Assembly (NCBI GenBank): GCA_964019335.1 | Contig: OZ025689.1 | Coordinates: 124,001 to 188,000, forward strand | Source: Diplonema japonicum | Taxonomy: Eukaryota; Protista; Euglenozoa: Diplonemea | Direction of reading: 5' to 3' | DNA length: 64,000 nt | Shown: in pieces, positions 11,449 through 60,521 of the stretch | Numbering within the stretch: position 1 is the first letter of the stretch | Layout: each line of letters begins with the position of its first letter | Translations under genes and position numbers: made by a program | Notes under the pieces: generated by a model | What the model saw: the letters and a program-made list of their open reading frames with translations, nothing else | Told to the model about the DNA's origin: nothing | The model's database searches: none

Positions 11449-12925
11449 CCATTCTTTTATGCGTTTTTGCGCTCACCGGCCGAGCTGCGCTTAGTCCCCG
11501 TTGTCCCCGTTCTGGGGGCTCTGGCGGGTTCCTACTGCGGTGGTCAAACTGCGGGGCAGCCTTGTCGGAGTCTGCGACAGGTACCTGTCCCGCAAGCCTC
11601 ATGGTTCGTTCCCGCCACGGGTAAGCATATGTCTGCAGTGCGCGGTTCGCATCCGCCGCTGCATCCCTCGACTACCTCCAGCAGGTACTTCTGCACCAGT
11701 AAGGCCCTTGGCTTGTCTTGGCAGCCTCTGGGCACCACCCCATGGAGCCTCGTCGCCTTCGGCATAGCTGCCGGGTCCAGGTTCGCGTACTCCATCTTGC
11801 TCTGCACCGCGTCACCCGGCTCGCATCGCCAGAGGGCGTGCTCCAGCACCTCCGTGTAGCTGCCGAACCGTTCCTCACACACGTCGCAGAGGTGCTGCAG
11901 CGGGTTGTTCGGTTCCTGCGCCACGCCCCGCGCTCCCGGGTAGACCGCAAACACCGCTCCTGCAATCAGCCTCCTCAATCGGTACGCCGCCACTGGGTTG
12001 CCCGAGAGTGACCTCCACCACACGTTCGTGTCCGGGTCGGCTCCTTCCGGCATGCCGTCGTAGGAGTCCCTGTCTGCTAGCTCGGCTGCCGTCATGGCCC
12101 TCGCCACCCGACGGATCTCGTGCTTGCGCTCGCGTTCCGGCATGGCACCCAGCCCCATCACGAAATTCCAGCCTTTCCCGATCGCCTGCAGCCATCTTCT
12201 CATCAGGGTCCCCACTGGCTCCAGGGCTTCAATATCGCACTCCCGGTACAGGGCGGCACACCTCCCCATCCGGTCCCACAGCTCCGTATCCGACCCGCCT
12301 ACCTTCACCACTGTGCACAGCAGTCGGTAAAGCGTCACCACCAGCGGGTCCGTCGTGTGCCCTGGCAGCAAGACGTTCGCAACAGCACACGGCGAGCGCA
12401 TCTTGAACTTCGGTCCCCAGAGGCACGTCGCAACACTCGCTCGGATTGTACCCGCATCCATTTTCGAGGGGGGTGCATAGGCAACACCGTAGAGGCAGGA
12501 GGGGAGAATGGAGCTGGTGAGGATCCTCGCCTTCTGTGTGAACCCCAGCGGCATGGCGGCCAGTCTCCCGCAAGCGCGTCCCATCGCCTCAAGGGGCTTC
12601 GCCCTGTGCTCGCCGTCCATACATACCCGGACTCCCAGGACGCTGATCTCCTTTTTGGCTGTGAGCACCTCACGTCCGCACTTCACCGTTCCGTGCTCTG
12701 CCGTTGTAAACATGTCCGTCTTCTTCAGGTTGAGGTTCATCCCTGTCAGCAGAGAGAACTCGCACACCCCCGCTGCCGCCTTCTCCAGCGCGCTGAGCAG
12801 AGCTGCTATCAAGTAGACGTCGTCCGCGTATGACAGGGAATCAGCGCCGGGCACCTCCGCCATGATGGCCTTCACCATCACCCCTACCAGCGCGTTCACC
12901 ATCACCACCGAGATCGGGCACCCAG
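11449..12925 (-). mobile_element. 5'-truncated non-LTR retrotransposon, family B (RT C-terminal half plus CCHC)
   Basis: Begins at GCPISVVMVN, has YADD and CDVC...H...C in the intact 454-aa ORF. Both junctions lie in T-runs of the minus strand. Confidence 0.9.
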
Positions 12926-12990
12926 AAAAAAAAAGAAAACATAAAAAAAAGCAGATAAATTGACCAAAAAAAGAAAGAAAAAAAAAAAAA

Positions 12991-13122
12991 CTATTCTTTT
13001 AAGGTATGCGTTTTTGCGCTCACCGGCCGCGCTGTACTTAGTCCCCGTTGTCCCCGTTCTGGGGGCTCTGGCGGGTTCGTACTGCGGTGGTAAAACTGCG
13101 TGCAGCCTTGTCGGGGTCTGCG
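12991..13122 (-). mobile_element. ~130-nt 3'-end copy of family B LINE
   Basis: Near-identical to 11450-11577 (GGGGACAACGGGGAC, CCGCCAGAGCCCCCAG). Lies about 20 nt downstream of the kinase stop. Confidence 0.85.
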
Positions 13123-13143
13123 AAAAAAAAAAAACAGCCCAAT

Positions 13144-14412
13144 TCAGCAAGCCAGCAAACCAATGAGGGACGACAGGTCGGCAGGGTGGTCCGATAAATA
13201 TGGTGAATCCAAATGCGAGGCAGCAGATGGACGGCGGTAAGGGGATCTGGTCAAAAGGGACAGGAGAAAGGAAGAAAGGTGAGCCGGGGTGTTATCGGGA
13301 AGTCGTGACTGGAGCACGGGGGACATGGCGGAGAGTTGAAAAAGCTTAAGAGTCGACAGCTCAGAGAAACAAGGCCATTCCTCCTCCGTGGGCGGCCACC
13401 CCACCAGTTCGACAACCTCAGTCATAACAGGGATCTCACTGGTATAATTTTCCAACAAGTGTTTCCCAACCCAAGCCTCGGCCAACGTCATCCCAGTGCT
13501 CCACACATCTACTGTAAGACCATAGTCCTCCTTACCCAACAAACATTCAGGCGGCCGGTACGGCAGCGTCATCCTACTATACAACGGCGAGACAGGCTTG
13601 AGCTTGTCCTCCTCAGACATACATCGGGACATACCATAGTCACATAGCATAACCCCGCCTGCTTTGCTTAATAAAACATTCGCTGGCTTGATGTCTCTGT
13701 GCATGATGTCATGGCTGTGCAGGTGTGACACTGCGGTTAGAATCGCCTTCGAGACGATCTGATGAGCGGGTAACGGCAAGCAGCCTTTTCTTTTCAAAAG
13801 ATGGGACAGGTCAACGTCCATTTTCGGCAGGACCAAAATGGGCATTTTCATGCTGTTTTGCAGGACCTCCAGCAAGGGTAAGGTGTGTTTGGACGGGTCC
13901 CCGCAGAGTTTCATGGTGCTGATCTCTCGGAGGGCCATCATTGGGACACCTGTGTCGCCCTGATCTCGGGAGATACGTTTCATGTTAGACACGTTGAGAA
14001 CCTTGCAGGCGACCTGTTCTCCCGTGTCTCGTATTTCTGCGTTGTACACCCACCCGTATGCTCCTTCACCAAGTTTGGATTTTCGTCGGACTGCTTTCAC
14101 GCTTCGTGTGGAGCCGTAGACAGAGGGCGTGGTGACCTCTTCGTCGAAACGTTCTGCGTCGCTGTCCCAACCGGAGCCCGTCATGGCGCCTTCGCATGTT
14201 ACTGTAAAGACGTAGCCGTCTTGAACGTGTCTTGCTGGGGTGTCGCCTCTTCCCAACACTTCTCCGTCCCCGTAGGCTATGTGGAAGAATTCTGCGTTCA
14301 TGTGGATTTCTTTCGCCACGAGCGCGTACACCTCACTCCCTGTCACTTCCTTGTCGACGCAGAAGCTGCATATGCCGTTGATAGGGTTCTTCACGAGGAT
14401 AGTCACTGCCAT
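13144..14412 (-). CDS. CDK-like Ser/Thr kinase with probable N-terminal ubiquitin-like domain
   Basis: GEGAYG, VACK, PMMALRE at the PSTAIRE position, HRDIKPAN, DYG, YRPPE, DVWSTG. The first ~75 aa look like a beta-grasp fold. Confidence 0.85.
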   Translation of the reverse strand: MAVTILVKNPINGICSFCVDKEVTGSEVYALVAKEIHMNAEFFHIAYGDGEVLGRGDTPARHVQDGYVFTVTCEGAMTGSGWDSDAERFDEEVTTPSVYGSTRSVKAVRRKSKLGEGAYGWVYNAEIRDTGEQVACKVLNVSNMKRISRDQGDTGVPMMALREISTMKLCGDPSKHTLPLLEVLQNSMKMPILVLPKMDVDLSHLLKRKGCLPLPAHQIVSKAILTAVSHLHSHDIMHRDIKPANVLLSKAGGVMLCDYGMSRCMSEEDKLKPVSPLYSRMTLPYRPPECLLGKEDYGLTVDVWSTGMTLAEAWVGKHLLENYTSEIPVMTEVVELVGWPPTEEEWPCFSELSTLKLFQLSAMSPVLQSRLPDNTPAHLSSFLLSLLTRSPYRRPSAASHLDSPYLSDHPADLSSLIGLLAC

Positions 14413-14780
14413 TTCGTTTTTGATCCTCCACCCCCCCCCCCCCCCCCTTCCGCCCCTGCCCTGTGGTTTCCTTTAAAGATTATTTTGACTTACTTAGTTT
14501 AGATAGCGAGAGAGGAAAGTCGTATAAAAAAGACGGATCCCGTGTGGTGGTTGGGAACCATCTCTTCGCCACGGCCCCCGTCCGGCCGTGGGCAGGGTCA
14601 CCACGGGCAGGTGAATGGGGGAGGCAGTCCAGTTGGCTTCCTTAAAAAAGATGCGATGTCACATGCAAACTCCGCGCGAGAGCCGCATGACAAAAAAGAA
14701 AAGAAAAAATTAAAGAAGGAAAAAGGATGCAGTGTGTACGCATCCCCCCCCTGCAGGGTCGGAGAAAGAGAAGAAAAAAA

Positions 14781-14823
14781 AGATGTCTTTGAAGGGAACC
14801 TGCAGTATGTGACAGGATCGCCT
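14781..14823 (-). repeat. Family D stem-loop retroposon tail
   Basis: Near-identical to 50679-50720. Confidence 0.7.
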
Positions 14824-15006
14824 TAAAAAGAAAAGAACCGACTTTTTAGCATTTGTTTTGCGCCGGTATAAATACTCTTTAGCTCGTACAAGAGACTGAG
14901 CGGTTCTTGTTGAGTACAAAAAAAAAAAAAAAAAAAAAAAAACCGTTTCCGGCAGGGGAAGGAGAGAGGGACCTTTTTTTCTCTTTTTTGTAATTATGAA
15001 ATCGGT

Positions 15007-15095
15007 CCTATTTTTCGAGGCATTATACTAAAAGGCAGCTGAAGCATTAGTGTAAGTGCTTTTATGTTGGCGCTGCCTGCCTGTCACAGAAAAGG
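15007..15095 (-). promoter_or_regulatory. Candidate SECIS element in the 3' UTR of the AhpD-like gene (atypical)
   Basis: Folded by hand. Helix I CCUUUU/AAAUAGG; core GUGAC/CGAA with tandem G-A; helix II AGGCA/UGCCU plus GGCAGC/GCUGCC with an 11-nt 3' bulge; unpaired AA; apical AAGCA/UGCUU mini-stem. Confidence 0.4.
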
Positions 15096-15187
15096 TTTCG
15101 ATACACGGCCGTTCATAAGAAAGGGTCCGCCCTCCCCCTCCGCACGTGCGAGAAAGGAAAGAAAAAGTTTGTTCAACAAATGTCAAT

Positions 15188-15799
15188 TTATTGGCCAGGA
15201 GCGCCCTCGCCGTGACCGAGAGGGACACCAAGGCCAGCAGCGACACGGTTGGCGTAGGCGAAGTAAGAGGCGACCTGCACCGTGTCGAGGATCTCACGGT
15301 CGGAGAAGCCGGATGTGCGCAACGCGTCCACGTCGCTTTTGGTCATTTCGGAAGGGTGGCTTGTCAACTTGGTAGAGTAAACAGCAAGTGCGTGTTCCCT
15401 GTCAGTCAGCTCAGACATGTCGCCTGCCACAAGCTTGTCAGCAACGTGCTTGCGTGCATCAGGCAGCAGGCTTCGCAGGCCTGCTGCGTGGTGCGTGTGT
15501 CAGTACCCACAGTTGTTCAGATTGCTCACCACCACCGCCACGACCTCCCTCTCCACAAAGCTCAAAGGGCTCTCCTCCTTCATGCACTGCTTGTACAGCA
15601 CCTCGTGCGACACCATGGACGCGGGGTTCAGAGAGTGCACCTTGTCGATGTTGTCCACACTGCCGTCGGGCTTCCCATACTTCGCATAACACTCTTTCAA
15701 CTCCCCTACGGCGTCCTGGGGCTCAACTACCTCGATGAACGGGCCTTGAGGAGGCACCCTGCACACGGTACTGCTACTGCATAACGTGCGCCGAAACAT
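15188..15799 (-). CDS. AhpD/CMD-family peroxidase-related enzyme with in-frame TGA at the second CxxC position (probable selenocysteine); 203 aa
   Basis: One frame reads MFRRTLCSSS...HSLNP...EREVVAVVVSNLNNCGY-TGA(15500-15502)-HTHHAAGL...LRTSGFSDREILDTVQVASYFAYANRVAAGLGV. Both halves fit the family, and the only stop sits at the resolving Cys position of N.C.YC...H. Confidence 0.85.
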
Positions 15800-15896
15800 T
15801 TTTTTCTTTTTTCTTATCCCCCCTCCTTCTTTTATTTGTTGGCGGGGGGGAGAAGCAAAATGAGAAGACGAGTTTCTTTTTTCTTTTCTTCTTTTT

Positions 15897-18428
15897 TTAC
15901 TGGAACCCGTCCCAGGGGTTAGTCTCGTCGTCGCTGACCCATCCTGTTTCTTCTCCTGCGGGGATGTCCCCGACTGCTTCGTCAAGGACGGACGCCATGC
16001 CTTCCCGCCTGCCGGTGGTGTTGACAAGCGAGGTGAGGTTGTCGAAGATGTTCTCCAGGTTATCGACCTTGACCGCGCTGCGTCCCTTGTGCAGCATGGC
16101 ATCCGTCACAGCACCCTCTACGGTGTCCCAGCTGTCGGTTCCGTTCTGTGCAGCGTGTTGTGCATTGTGTTCATAACATACGTCAAACGTCGATGGCATG
16201 AGTGTGCTGTTCCGCGGCTGCCGGCTCTTCCTTTGAGCTTTCGACTTTGCGGTGTTCTTGCTTGCAGTGAGCTTATTCTTCCAATCGCTGTGTAGGTCCA
16301 ACCACATGCGTCGTCTCAAGTTGAACTCGCTCTCGTCCTCCACTACCCAGTCGTCGAGGCCAACGCTGCTCACATCCGACAGCCCGTCAAAGTCCTGTGC
16401 CTCTTCTATCTTCTTTTCTTGGAACTCTTCCTTCGCAGCCATTTGGGTGGGATACAGAGGTGGTATGTTGTTCACTCTTACGACATCTTCCTCAACCCCA
16501 GCATTCACCCCTTCCATACTGCGGGTGGAGGGAATTTGCATTTTCTCTTCTTTTTCTTTTTTTGCATACTCAAATAAACCCAACTCATCGTCGCTCTCTG
16601 CTTTTGCGTCACCAATCTCCCTCTCGAGGGCCTGGATACCTTCATCGTTTAATGTGGCTTCGAGGAGCTCATCGCCTGCTTTCAAATCACTGCCCACCAC
16701 CTTGCTCGGGTCGTACTCTTTGGTGTGGAGGTGATTTTTCTTTTTCTTTTTCTTTTTATACCACCGGCCTGCGCCTCCAAATCTTCTAAATTGGTAATGT
16801 CGTCCGTGTTGGACATGGCAAGAAGGTTTTTGAGAATGTCCTCGTCCTCCTCTCCGCTCTGGAAGGGCTCCTGCATGAGATGGTCGTCATCTACGAATCT
16901 GACGTCGTTGAGGTTTGCAACATCGTTAATGGGCCCGTCTTCTTCTGCTGGGGCTTTGCTTTCGTCAATCCGACGTTCTTCTTCCTGTTGCTCCATTTCG
17001 CGAGCAGCTCTCTGTTGCCTGACCTTGATGAATTCGGCAAGAGGTAGGTCTGAGGTGAGATTGGGGTGAAGTGTGTTGTGCCATACCAGCATCTGCGTCT
17101 GTTGTGGATGCATAGGAAGCGTACGAGGAGTCGCTTGAGGTGGCCAGGTCAACATCGATGTGTGCGATGTCCTCCGCCCACTCTCCTTCTTCCTCCACAG
17201 TGGACGTTGAGACTGACGAGACGGAGACGGAATCGCTGGGTGACGATGATGAGGATTCCACAGATTTCGCGCGTTTTCTCTTCTTCGATTTGTTGGCTTG
17301 CTTGCGCTTTATTTTCTTCTCTTGTTTCATCTCTTCTTTCTTCTCGGCCACCTTCGCATTCTTCTTCATTTTCTTCCGGTATTTCTTTTTGTTCTCCATC
17401 TGCTTCTCGTATTTCAGCTTCGTGGCCGCTCGTTGCCTGGTCACTCCGCTGAATTTTCCGAGCATTATTTTCGACTCTTTTGCGTTGACGAAGCTTTCAA
17501 CAGCGGAGGTGTCCTTTCCTCGGCGGGCGAGGTATGATTTTAACAATTCGTCGCGTCTCTGCTGCATGAGGAGGGAGGCGGGGAGCGCGTTGGTTTTCGC
17601 GGTTTCAGAGTCGACGCTTTCCTTTTTGATCTTCGAGTACAGCTTCTTCGCCTCCTCCAGCCTTTTTATCGCAACGTTGTTGGTGATGCTCAACACCCTT
17701 GTAACGTTTTCCAGTCGTATCTGACTGTAGCCATGTAACCGTGCTGCGAGGTAGATCGCGGCAGCCAACACACCAGCGGGCTTCCTCCCTTGTGAAATCC
17801 AGTCCCGGTTCATCCTTGCCATCAGCGTCGCTGCTGACTGTGTCACTTCCGTTTGCTTCGAACGCATTCCCAAAACGGAAATATATTTGTGAATGTACAG
17901 CGATGGATCGACAGTGCTGAGCTGCATTTTAAGATGCTTCATAACGTATTCTGCTATCTGACCGATTGCATAGGGGGATTCTGCTGTCACTTCGCTGAAG
18001 TCCACCAACATCAAAGGTGTGTTTCCCGCCATACGAGATGCTATGTACAAACAAGCGCAGCTTGTGAGTTGCATGCGACGATTTGCTAGAAGGTGTTTTT
18101 GTACGGCCATGTTGTAGACCTTCATTGCGGACTCTACAAGGTCAGATGTGAGCTCCATTGTAATGGAAATGTCTTCCATTTTCGTTCTTGCCTTTGCGAT
18201 GACGCCCTCAGAGGGGCCGGCTCCGAATGTTCGTGCAGTGAACGATCGGCCGCCGGGCATCCATTTCTTGCCGCCCCCACCCCCCCCGCCGGAAGGCACG
18301 TGTGCGCCTTGAAATTCTTCGGTCAGCAAATTACTTTCAACTACAAGACCACACGAACCGCACACCTGCGTCCCGTTTGCATTGTCGGTGACAAACCCGC
18401 TGCGGGGTGCACCGCACAAGCAGTCCAT
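15897..18428 (-). CDS. BRF1: TFIIIB subunit BRF1; introns 17050-17086 and 16718-16761
   Basis: Zn ribbon CLC...CGSCG, cyclin repeats with ACLYIA, DPSLYI and MNRDWISQGRKPAG, and a C-terminal LSDV...DDWV...E...RRMW TBP-binding-like block. Two GT-AG introns join three ORFs in frame. Confidence 0.88.
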
Positions 18429-50605: not shown

Positions 50606-50678
50606 TTCTTTTTTTTTGGGGGGGGGAGCCTTCTTTTTTGTGTTAAAGAAACGCAAAAAAAAAAAATAATAAAATAAA

Positions 50679-50720
50679 AGATGTCTTTGAGGGAACCTGC
50701 AGTATGTGACAGGATCGCCT
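50679..50720 (-). repeat. Family D stem-loop tail with probable target-site duplication
   Basis: AATAATAAAATAAAA occurs at both 50665-50679 and 50728-50742. Confidence 0.75.
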
Positions 50721-58016: not shown

Positions 58017-60521
58017 TTAAAACTTACAAGGTGCTGGTTTGCACCTCGGGTCCACGTCCTCCCCAGGCTTTCCTCGTATCAAAAGCTGGCTGCTTTCCCA
58101 TTTTTTGGTCTGTTTGTGTGTGGGTGTTGTGTTGTAAAGGGCAGCATACAAATGGCTTCATTTCCTTCTTCTTCCCAAAGACACCGGGGACTCTGACTGC
58201 ATAGGTCTCCGCCTTGTCTTTGGTCTTCTCCTTCACCACCCCCACGCTACCGGCGCTGGCGATCACCTGCTCGCCGAAAACTAAGTCGGTTTTGAGTATC
58301 ACCCTTTGCCCCACTGGAAGATCTAATCTTTCTGCCGAACTGGCAGGAGTGGGGGTAGCCGGTATGGGTTCAGGTGTAGCTGGGTTGGGCTTCGGTGTAG
58401 CTGGGATGGGTGTAGCAGGAGGAGGAGGTGGTGGTGGTGGTGGTGGCGGGGGAGGAAGAGTCGGAGGCAACAGTCGGGGTCGGGCCGTCGGGGCCATGAT
58501 CCTACCGCCTCTTGCAGTGCCACCGCCCCGTGCACTACCGCCACCCCGTGCAGTCGGCACTCCACCACCCCCCCTCCCTCTTCCATGTCCCCCAGGTTTC
58601 TCGTTCGCAGCTGGCAAAGCAAGCCCCGATGGTACTGCCTGTGGTATCACCACGGGTACGGGCGGCGTTGGTGTAACAACTTCGCTAACGGGTACCCGTG
58701 CGACCTTCTTCAAAGGTGAATGAACTACTTCCAACTCTGTACCCCTGTTTTAGTTGTTCTTGAGACCTCCTTCACATACTTGTACCACGACGTGCCGCCG
58801 TAGGGCCCTTTCACGAGGAACACATCGTCTTGCTCGTCGACAATGATGCCGACATCGCTGCCCTCAAGGACACCGTCCTCACGAGAGAAGCGGCGAAGGA
58901 CAACATGCTCGCCTGTAGCAGGGCGGGCACGGGAAACCGCAGGTGTAATGGGAGCAACCGCAAGTGCTTTGGGAACTGGGGGAACTGGGGTGTCCTTGTT
59001 GTCAGCAACAGGGGCAGGAGTGATGAGGGGTACAAAACTAAGCAACGATGGGCTCACGATGAGGCTTACAGGCCACACCGACGTCGTGGAGTCGAGGTGC
59101 GAGAGCTGCATCACCTCGTCAGGTGACACAGACTGAATTGTTTCTCTGAGGGGCACCACTAACGCAGGCTGTCCACATTTCCCTTTCATGTCCTCTGTCC
59201 ACAGTTCCTTGGACACCAGCTCTGTCGCTTCCTTGGCAAAGTCACAGTCACTTGTTACACCCACCACAGCCCCTTCTGTCAGAGAGGGGAATAACAGTGG
59301 CTGCAACACTCTCAACGGGAATTTCCAGGTGCCGGAGGGAGCAGCGACCTGTACGCTGTTCTCTGTTTTGTTTGATTCGACGATCACAACCTTTGTGCCG
59401 CACACAGCTGCCATGCCTGTCTTCCACGGTAGGCTGCTTAGGCGCGTTAACTGTTGAGTTCAAGAATTTGGAGGAAGGTCATACCTCCTCACATCTTTGT
59501 ACTACCCTCACTGTCTCGTTCTTCACCACTTCGAACCACGTCAGTCTGAGGCTCTTTACCACCAGCTCTGGCCAGGCCCTCACTATGCTGTCGTCGTGGC
59601 GCACCATCACTGTCTTGTCCGCCTCGACGCTTTCTACGATTGCTCTTCGCCCTGCAAAGCGGATCAAGTAGGGTAGCTTGTGTCCGGTGGAGCGGAGCTG
59701 TGTTTTCCACGTTGCAAGGGCGACTGGGGCATACCTCACTGATCATGTCTGAGATCACCACTTCCTCGCCTTCTGCGAGCTCCACCTGCTCCGCGGCAGG
59801 CCGCGGTTGTATTTCAGTGCTCCACTTTGCATCTGCGCCAAAAAAGTGCACGTCAAGGGCAGCAGCGGCTTCGGACTAGAAAAAATATGAAAGGGGAAAT
59901 AGGTCATACCATAGTAGCGAGGACAGGCCAAGTGAGAGCGATGCCGTCGTGGTGGCGGAGGCGGATGCTGCCTGCAGCACGGTCGGCTGCGTCGTATCGG
60001 ATAACGGTGGCAAACCTCCCGCAGTAGGAGGGCATGGAGGGGGACCAGCCTACGGCGGGGGTGGCATGGGTGAGGGCAAGGATTCCCTTAGGAGAGACTG
60101 CGACGAGGACGTGGTCGCCTATACGGATTGCTTCCGGATGGCCCTCGATGTCGAGACGGTCTTTGATCATGCCTACGATCTGGACGGCTTTGAGGGGCCA
60201 CGTTACGGATCGCCCATCGTAGTGCGTCACACGCAGTACACCGTCCATCCTGTCTGTTGCATCATACCGTGTGACCTTCCCTGTCTGCCCACAGTACTGT
60301 TCCATGCCTTCCCGCCACCCAGCGTTAGGTGACACACTGAATGCCTGCTTCACTAAGATCATGTCCCTCAGCACCTGCACTTCAATGCCCTCCCAAGGTT
60401 CCACCCTGTTCAATTCCTTCACAGCTGCCTCCGCATCAATATCGGACACAAGCGTCAGATACCTCACCCCCGTCACCACCAGCAGAAACACGAGCAGTCC
60501 GGCCCATATCCTGCTGCGCAT
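58017..60521 (-). CDS. Membrane-anchored protein with repeated SH3-like (Mind bomb repeat-like) modules and a Pro-rich linker; five GTATG-AG introns
   Basis: Repeated W...M..YCG..G.V...D......V.WP units. The ORFs join in frame through five short introns. Confidence 0.7.

Follow-up and report, generated by a model that had tools for sequence, protein, structure and literature searches.

The window, a 64,000-nt stretch of Diplonema japonicum contig OZ025689.1, contains an AhpD-like coding sequence (NCBIfam TIGR01926) on the minus strand at 15188–15799. It runs from an ATG at 15799–15797 to a TAA at 15190–15188 and has 203 codons, including one UGA. This codon, an in-frame TGA at 15500–15502 on the minus strand (codon 100, next base C), is the proposed selenocysteine (Sec) codon. 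It is the single internal stop in the minus-strand frame 15799–15188, which has no frameshift, and it lies in the context S-N-L-N-N-C-G-Y-[TGA]-H-T-H-H-A-A-G-L. The redox motif around it, C97-G-Y-U100-H-T-H-H104 (CxxUxxxH), was placed at 15488–15511 (minus strand) by alignment to the solved homologue 2oyo and to the protein P0006. An earlier reading of the letters by themselves, the sequence-only reading, had joined two fragments of the open reading frame (ORF) track, 15500–16102 and 15188–15430 (both minus strand), into one frame. Both are present in the ORF list and do form one frame. That reading had also treated TGA as an ordinary stop here, with no change of genetic code, and the stop usage agrees: TGA is the commonest stop in the window, closing 10 of its 24 long ORFs, and is therefore not reassigned.

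All but two of the long ORFs in the window are on the minus strand and form one array. The AhpD-like gene is part of this same-strand eukaryotic gene array, in a 62.5-Mb assembly of 132 contigs, and its neighbour is ~100 nt away. Only ~100 nt (15800–15896) separate the stop of the upstream gene from the AhpD-like ATG. This interval contains a pyrimidine tract and an AG at 15830–15829, at which the match to a contig from sequencing run X13 ends; the AG may be the trans-splice acceptor of the AhpD-like gene.

The two pieces of the frame, an N piece of 99 aa and a C piece of 103 aa, were searched separately, and the six-frame genome search itself read across the stop. Both pieces matched TIGR01926, 'peroxidase-related enzyme', at profile positions 1–81 for the N piece and 85–174 for the C piece, with scores of 38.4 and 74.0 bits. 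The two matches are collinear, and there is therefore no gap, frameshift, or missing residue; the three profile positions between them are the TGA and the next two residues. Read through in the six-frame search, the frame scored 123.9 bits (cut-off, 81.8 bits) across profile positions 1–174 of 178, with '1 TGA' inside, and the read-through protein was present as a single copy in the genome. A second, distant TIGR01926-like domain was found at G000:C72:350711-351094 (50 bits), with no stop and inside a 540-residue open frame.

Matches of the C half to solved structures included 2oyo (E 6e-16) and 6k40 (E 1e-14). When aligned to 2oyo, Y99 corresponds to residue 93 and H103 to residue 97, with no gap across the site. 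The TGA falls in the column of Cys94, the second Cys of C-L-Y-C-A-V-S-H, and H104 is the conserved His. Among full-length Cys homologues, the closest found was the metagenomic P0006, which reads R-C-A-Y-C-K-T-H-H and has Cys in the TGA column. The proposal of an AhpD/CMD-fold protein with a CxxU site is upheld by a TIGR01926 score well above the cut-off and by the position of the TGA on the second motif Cys. Other profiles gave lower scores. The 175-bit cut-off of NF041238, AhpD_rel_CFYUT (seleno)protein, was not reached (C piece, 19 bits). The N piece alone scored 14.2 on Pfam CMD (PF02627; cut-off, 23) and 19.6 on the TIGR00778 AhpD core domain (cut-off, 27.8), both of which are domains split by the UGA; P0006, with Cys, scores above the TIGR00778 cut-off. 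From the alignments, the Diplonema protein probably has in common with Mycobacterium tuberculosis AhpD, 2oyo, and 6k40 the AhpD-core fold and the CxxC...H redox centre. It differs from M. tuberculosis AhpD in that it is not an AhpD equivalog (only TIGR00778 is touched, below its cut-off) and in having a probable Sec for Cys. We take the replaced position to be Cys133 of M. tuberculosis AhpD. Koshkin et al. (2003) reportedly described this residue as the nucleophile towards a disulfide or sulfenate of the partner and placed the +4 His in the proton relay.

The first ~20 residues, M-F-R-R-T-L-C-S-S-S-T-V-C-R-V-P-P-Q-G-P (15740–15799, minus strand), form an N-terminal extension with three Arg and no acidic residue. 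The Arg/Ser-rich presequence that had been proposed here corresponds to a real feature: bacterial homologues, which start at the equivalent of I-E-V-V-E-P, have no such extension, and one of the same character is kept in the relative P0005. Its composition suggests an organellar presequence, probably mitochondrial.

A word-indexed protein search identified very few relatives. One, P0005 (107 aa, 68% identical), has ...I-N-N-C-G-Y as its last residues and so ends at the same column. Another, P0002 (79 aa), is 64% identical to the C half and ends G-A-P-G-Q like the Diplonema protein. For each of the two, the record gives an ENA contig of 867,762 bp. These protein records therefore represent a second, well-diverged organism in which the frame breaks at the same codon and both halves are conserved. 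A metagenome scan for orthologues yielded only a Cys-form CMD protein (27% identical).

A profile made from the two N pieces was searched against 1.84 billion cluster representatives. Among the best 149 other proteins, 87 end at the C-x-[YFW] column and 38 carry C-x-Y-C-x-x-x-H. The 87 column-ending proteins include 55 of ~81 residues, which is the bacterial form, and 32 with N-terminal extensions of at least 15 residues. Cluster look-ups placed EukProt entries from Picomonas judraskeda, Picozoa sp. COSAG01, and the choanoflagellate Stephanoeca diplocostata among the extended, column-ending proteins, together with a Tara eukaryotic transcript. A quick maximum-likelihood tree was constructed from 81 shared columns, omitting P0049 (>400 residues) and matches without the terminal C-x-[YFW] or the C-x-Y-C-x-x-x-H motif. 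The Diplonema protein pairs with P0005 (SH-aLRT 96), and the pair is nested in a 16-row clade (SH-aLRT 90, without a star), 14 of the rows being extended and truncated, eukaryotic entries included. This clade is sister to a small Cys clade. The tree is weak because it has only 81 columns. With other eukaryotic entries in the clade, a private bacterial transfer into this lineage appears unlikely. The view of the protein as a bacterial enzyme retargeted in its host thus fits poorly with the phylogeny, which gives a clade of extended, UGA-truncated sequences that includes Picozoa, a choanoflagellate, and Tara entries.

The locus is present in part in 14 sequencing runs. Half or more of its words are contained in 10 of the 14; these ten share a single organism label and were produced in three studies. 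Run X3, which belongs to a different study from the best holder's, has a 3539-nt contig on 14954–17100 with zero differences, and the TGA is therefore not an assembly slip of this record. No run is RNA on record. Contigs in X11, X12, and X13 appear to be RNA-derived because they skip two stretches bounded by GT..AG, 36 and 51 nt long, in the upstream neighbour. The skipped stretches (16146–16181 and 16519–16569, in the minus-strand gene upstream; 5' site GTATGT) resemble a pair of tiny spliceosomal introns that keep the frame and so are included in the mechanical ORF. The apparently RNA-derived contigs of X11 and X12 cover the neighbouring genes and leave 14842–15779 without coverage. Run X13 has a 296-nt contig, from a relative, that matches 15548–15829 only, with two differences, both synonymous and at third positions.

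The genome encodes machinery for Sec, including a tRNA-Sec (72.9 bits, anticodon UCA), SepSecS (384 bits), and an SPS2/SelD (208 bits) of Sec type, with its own in-frame TGA. About 15 other genes in the genome have a TGA at a redox Cys. Among them are three Trx-fold genes (W-U-P-x-C), ~10 GILT genes (E-S-L-U-P-G-C), and two deiodinase-like genes, each with the TGA at the catalytic Cys. Sec genes of the Trx-fold, GILT, deiodinase-like, and SPS2 types are located at G000:C8:141016-143056, C77:410891-411139, C72:480643-481140, C15:739232-739705, and C38:556625-557449, and GILT Sec genes are found on contigs C5, C95, C33, C78, C64, and C11 of the same set. SelK and SelT were rejected as positive controls, as their Pfam matches were ambiguous or Cys forms.

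Spliced leader sequences were used to place the host. The 3' part of the euglenozoan leader has 217 copies in the genome, and the full leader reads ..ACCAACGATTCTAAAGCTACAGTTTCTGTACTTTATTG. This differs from the kinetoplastid AACTAACGC-type leader and is not of kinetoplastid type. The leader type 'Euglenozoa 14' is presumably that of Diplonema, and the AACTAACGC.. type that of kinetoplastids. Among described types, ..ACCAACGATTCTAAAGCTACAGTTTCTGTACTTTATTG is nearest to 'Euglenozoa 14' (PMC3795323). The 217 places are on most contigs (e.g., L009–L011), often near contig ends, and each 3' leader copy has the rest of the leader before it and different sequence after it; these dispersed copies may be retroposed SL-capped RNAs or the 5' ends of retroelements. 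The sequence-only reading had drawn its comparison from the kinetoplastid selenoproteins SelK, SelT, and SelTryp, the three described in trypanosomatids (PMC1557815; PMC12153298). A kinetoplastid host with three selenoproteins is supported neither by the leader nor by the many other Sec genes. The selenoproteome is large, and the comparison with the three trypanosomatid selenoproteins is therefore unfit here. What the Diplonema gene has in common with them is a euglenozoan host, UGA recoding with a SECIS in the 3' UTR (a candidate in this gene), and a SECIS that standard models miss; it differs in an unrelated protein family, a different spliced leader, and a much larger selenoproteome.

Immediately downstream of the UGA, a stem-loop is predicted at 15456–15494 (minus strand). 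It begins 8 nt after the UGA and has a perfect, G+C-rich stem of 9 bp (15487–15479 with 15471–15463). Its stability is −26.8 kcal/mol, compared to −16.0 ± 3.4 kcal/mol for synonymous recodings drawn from the codon usage of the window (P 0.0005–0.001), and the same recoding test applied to random coding positions gave a roughly uniform null. Eight of the 13 Sec sites tested in the genome had P <= 0.03 in this test. By analogy, the stem-loop looks like a Sec-redefinition element; it could equally be a relic of a bacterial SECIS. A Sec redefinition element (SRE) is said to have been described by Howard et al. in 2005 in vertebrate SEPN1. The likeness lies in a stable stem-loop a few nt 3' of the Sec UGA, located in the coding region and not accounted for by the encoded amino acids. 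The Diplonema stem-loop differs in its spacing of 8 nt, and it is a predicted fold.

A SECIS-like core, which we treat as a candidate, was identified in the 3' UTR at 15015–15088 (minus strand), with U-GUGA at 15088–15084 and the partner GA at 15016–15015. The core sequence is U-GUGA-C-A-G (15088–15081). Helix II has 11 bp in blocks of 5 and 6 bp, with a 3' bulge of 11 nt between them; beyond it come an internal loop rich in A, helix III of 5 bp, and an apical loop of 10 nt. The candidate is at the tip of a long, irregular 3' UTR hairpin of ~200 nt (14943–15157, minus strand; z = −1.9 only), which would act as an extended helix I and which ends at a poly(T) tract before the next gene.

Other Sec genes in the genome were used for comparison. 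The tandem Trx-fold pair has a common, clean form-2 SECIS that starts with GUGA, and a U-GUGA-Y-R-(C) core was found in the 3' UTR of every other Sec gene examined. SPS2, which was examined after the motif had been defined, has a single UGUGAYR in 1.26 kb, and this one is in a SECIS-like fold. The loop and helix III of the AhpD-like candidate, A-C-A-U-A-A-A-A-G-C-A, are a near repeat of those in the SPS2 candidate. The AhpD-like candidate is atypical in its bulged helix II, in a longer distance between the quartet and the A-run than the controls show, and in a G at the eighth core position, which is otherwise an invariant C. The descriptor used for the search was self-made, was tuned with the candidate already in view, and detects only about half of the control genes. 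It has six background places in 128 kb of window, and when the intergenic region of 775 nt was shuffled with its dinucleotides preserved, 0.8% of the shuffles matched. The chance expectation for the candidate is about 0.01–0.04 under a descriptor tuned post hoc. Because of this tuning and the detection of only half of the controls, 15088–15015 is called a candidate only for the SECIS of the AhpD-like gene.

Standard models did not recognize this type of element. An Rfam scan of 12500–16000 by E-value found no SECIS, and RF00031 (SECIS_1) had no match in the whole genome, clear Sec genes included; the missing Rfam match near the AhpD-like gene is therefore uninformative. A covariance model built from the SECIS of the tandem Trx-fold pair (R1) was too sequence-specific, finding only its two training copies, and a MAFFT alignment of seven candidate sequences aligned only the 5' core. 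We rejected an AUGA at 15116–15113 as an alternative SECIS core, as the fold places it in Watson-Crick pairs of the outer stem and the nearest GA would leave a helix II of only 4 bp. Descriptor matches at 59388 and 59246 (minus strand) were assigned to background, with no TGA-interrupted redox ORF upstream.

Taken with the Sec machinery of the genome (tRNA-Sec, SepSecS, and SPS2), the break kept in a relative, and the SECIS-like candidate in the 3' UTR, these observations make decoding by the eukaryotic Sec machinery, as had been proposed from the sequence, the most likely reading. We consider it likely, with good though incomplete confidence, that the UGA of the AhpD-like gene is decoded as selenocysteine. 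Under this interpretation, a nuclear euglenozoan gene would produce a ~22-kDa thiol/selenol oxidoreductase of AhpD fold and of the TIGR01926 family, with Sec as its second active-site Cys. The UGA at codon 100 would be read by tRNA-Sec during translation, directed by a GUGA-type, form-2-like SECIS (15088–15015) at the tip of the long 3' UTR hairpin. The stem-loop 8 nt downstream of the UGA may assist decoding in the manner of a Sec-redefinition element. In the enzyme, U100 would hold the nucleophilic position and C97 would resolve the selenenyl-sulfide.

Four other explanations were weighed. The UGA might be read through without selenium by a near-cognate tRNA (Cys, Trp, or Arg), or only the 99-residue N fragment might be made; we rate this as unlikely, although it is the strongest of the competing accounts. 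UGA-C is a leaky context, a strong downstream hairpin also promotes plain read-through, and the SECIS has the status of a candidate. However, the UGA falls at the column of the catalytic Cys in a family that has many Sec members, and the genome has a Sec system and uses UGA at a redox Cys in many genes. Judged by the fold of 2oyo and 6k40, the N fragment would be half an AhpD fold without the His and the C-terminal helices and would be non-functional.

It is still less probable, though slightly so, that the gene is a pseudogene, inactivated recently by the change of a TGC or TGT to TGA. One transition or transversion would suffice, and most of the gene is uncovered in the apparently RNA-derived contigs of X11 and X12. 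Against this, the relative that is 64–68% identical breaks at the same codon with both halves conserved, and a whole clade of relatives is truncated at the C-x-Y column. The Diplonema frame has no further stops or frameshifts, the differences in X13 are synonymous only, and an RNA hairpin appears to be selected just after the UGA.

It is very improbable that the TGA reflects faulty assembly or sequencing, or that the gene came from a bacterial contaminant and has a SECIS of bacterial type. The family is mostly bacterial and the post-UGA hairpin is at the position of a bacterial SECIS, but the DNA is identical in an independent run, and most of the locus is present in ten runs, which were produced in three studies. 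The gene also sits in a same-strand eukaryotic array in the 62.5-Mb assembly, and the neighbour ~100 nt away has spliceosomal introns. Removal of the UGA by an intron, for which a 27-nt GT...AG stretch spanning the UGA and the tiny 36- and 51-nt introns of the neighbour might be cited, is the least probable account and is excluded, since splicing would take out C-G-Y-U-H-T-H-H-A, the best-conserved motif in the family, through which the genomic frame is collinear, residue by residue, with the TIGR01926 profile and the PDB homologues.

We searched the literature to see whether Sec-containing members of this family had been described. AhpD-like proteins (COG2128, CxxU) were reported as a new prokaryotic selenoprotein family from the Sargasso Sea metagenome (PMC1088965). 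In the GOS data, 'AhpD-like 1' is abundant, as the fourth most abundant selenoprotein family (PMC2398784), and a 2026 review lists the AhpD-like selenoprotein under TIGR01926 (PMC13188914). Bacterial TIGR01926 CxxU selenoproteins have thus been catalogued since 2005, and the novelty implied by the sequence-only reading was overstated. A search with incomplete coverage of the literature found no AhpD-like selenoprotein in eukaryotes and nothing on diplonemid selenoproteins, with the family described as prokaryotic only, and a eukaryotic form of the TIGR01926 CxxU selenoprotein appears to be undescribed. The bacterial AhpD-like selenoproteins and the Diplonema protein belong to the same NCBIfam family and have the same CxxU...H motif and Sec column. 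The Diplonema gene differs in being nuclear, in its eukaryotic gene array, and in its N-terminal extension. The bacterial family uses a hairpin bound by SelB, whereas the Diplonema gene has a candidate 3' UTR SECIS that eukaryotic factors would read.

Selenocysteine decoding of this gene may also be part of a wider pattern, to which we give somewhat less than an even chance as a whole. The gene would belong to a eukaryotic branch of AhpD-like CxxU selenoproteins that is widespread and has gone unrecognized, and it would use a two-part, lineage-specific Sec signal made up of a SECIS with an invariant U-GUGA-Y-R core and a selected post-UGA stem-loop. This eukaryotic branch would comprise euglenozoan, Picozoa, choanoflagellate, and Tara transcript sequences that have been mis-called as stubs of ~100–140 residues. 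The SECIS would often cap a very long hairpin, most genes would have the stem-loop, and the two-part signal would be used across a large selenoproteome, with GILT and deiodinase-like enzymes among its members.

If Sec decoding of this gene is confirmed, AhpD-like proteins (TIGR01926) would join the eukaryotic selenoprotein families, and in several protist lineages gene callers would be cutting them short at the Sec codon. In an enzyme that, judging from the N-terminal extension, is probably organellar, Sec would be the nucleophile of an AhpD-type redox centre. The gene would also provide a handle on an unusual SECIS type, with a GUGA core, extended hairpins, and frequent UGA-adjacent hairpins, that standard models such as Rfam SECIS_1 miss entirely in this genome. 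Annotation of the Diplonema selenoproteome has to be done by hand or with a lineage-specific SECIS model.

A dispersed element of ~46 nt was also observed in the intergenic DNA of the window, at 14778–14823 and 50676–50720. Its summed contig depth in X3 is ~9800, compared to 16 in the flanks. It is also very deep in X11, X12, and X13, where it is joined to many different flanks.
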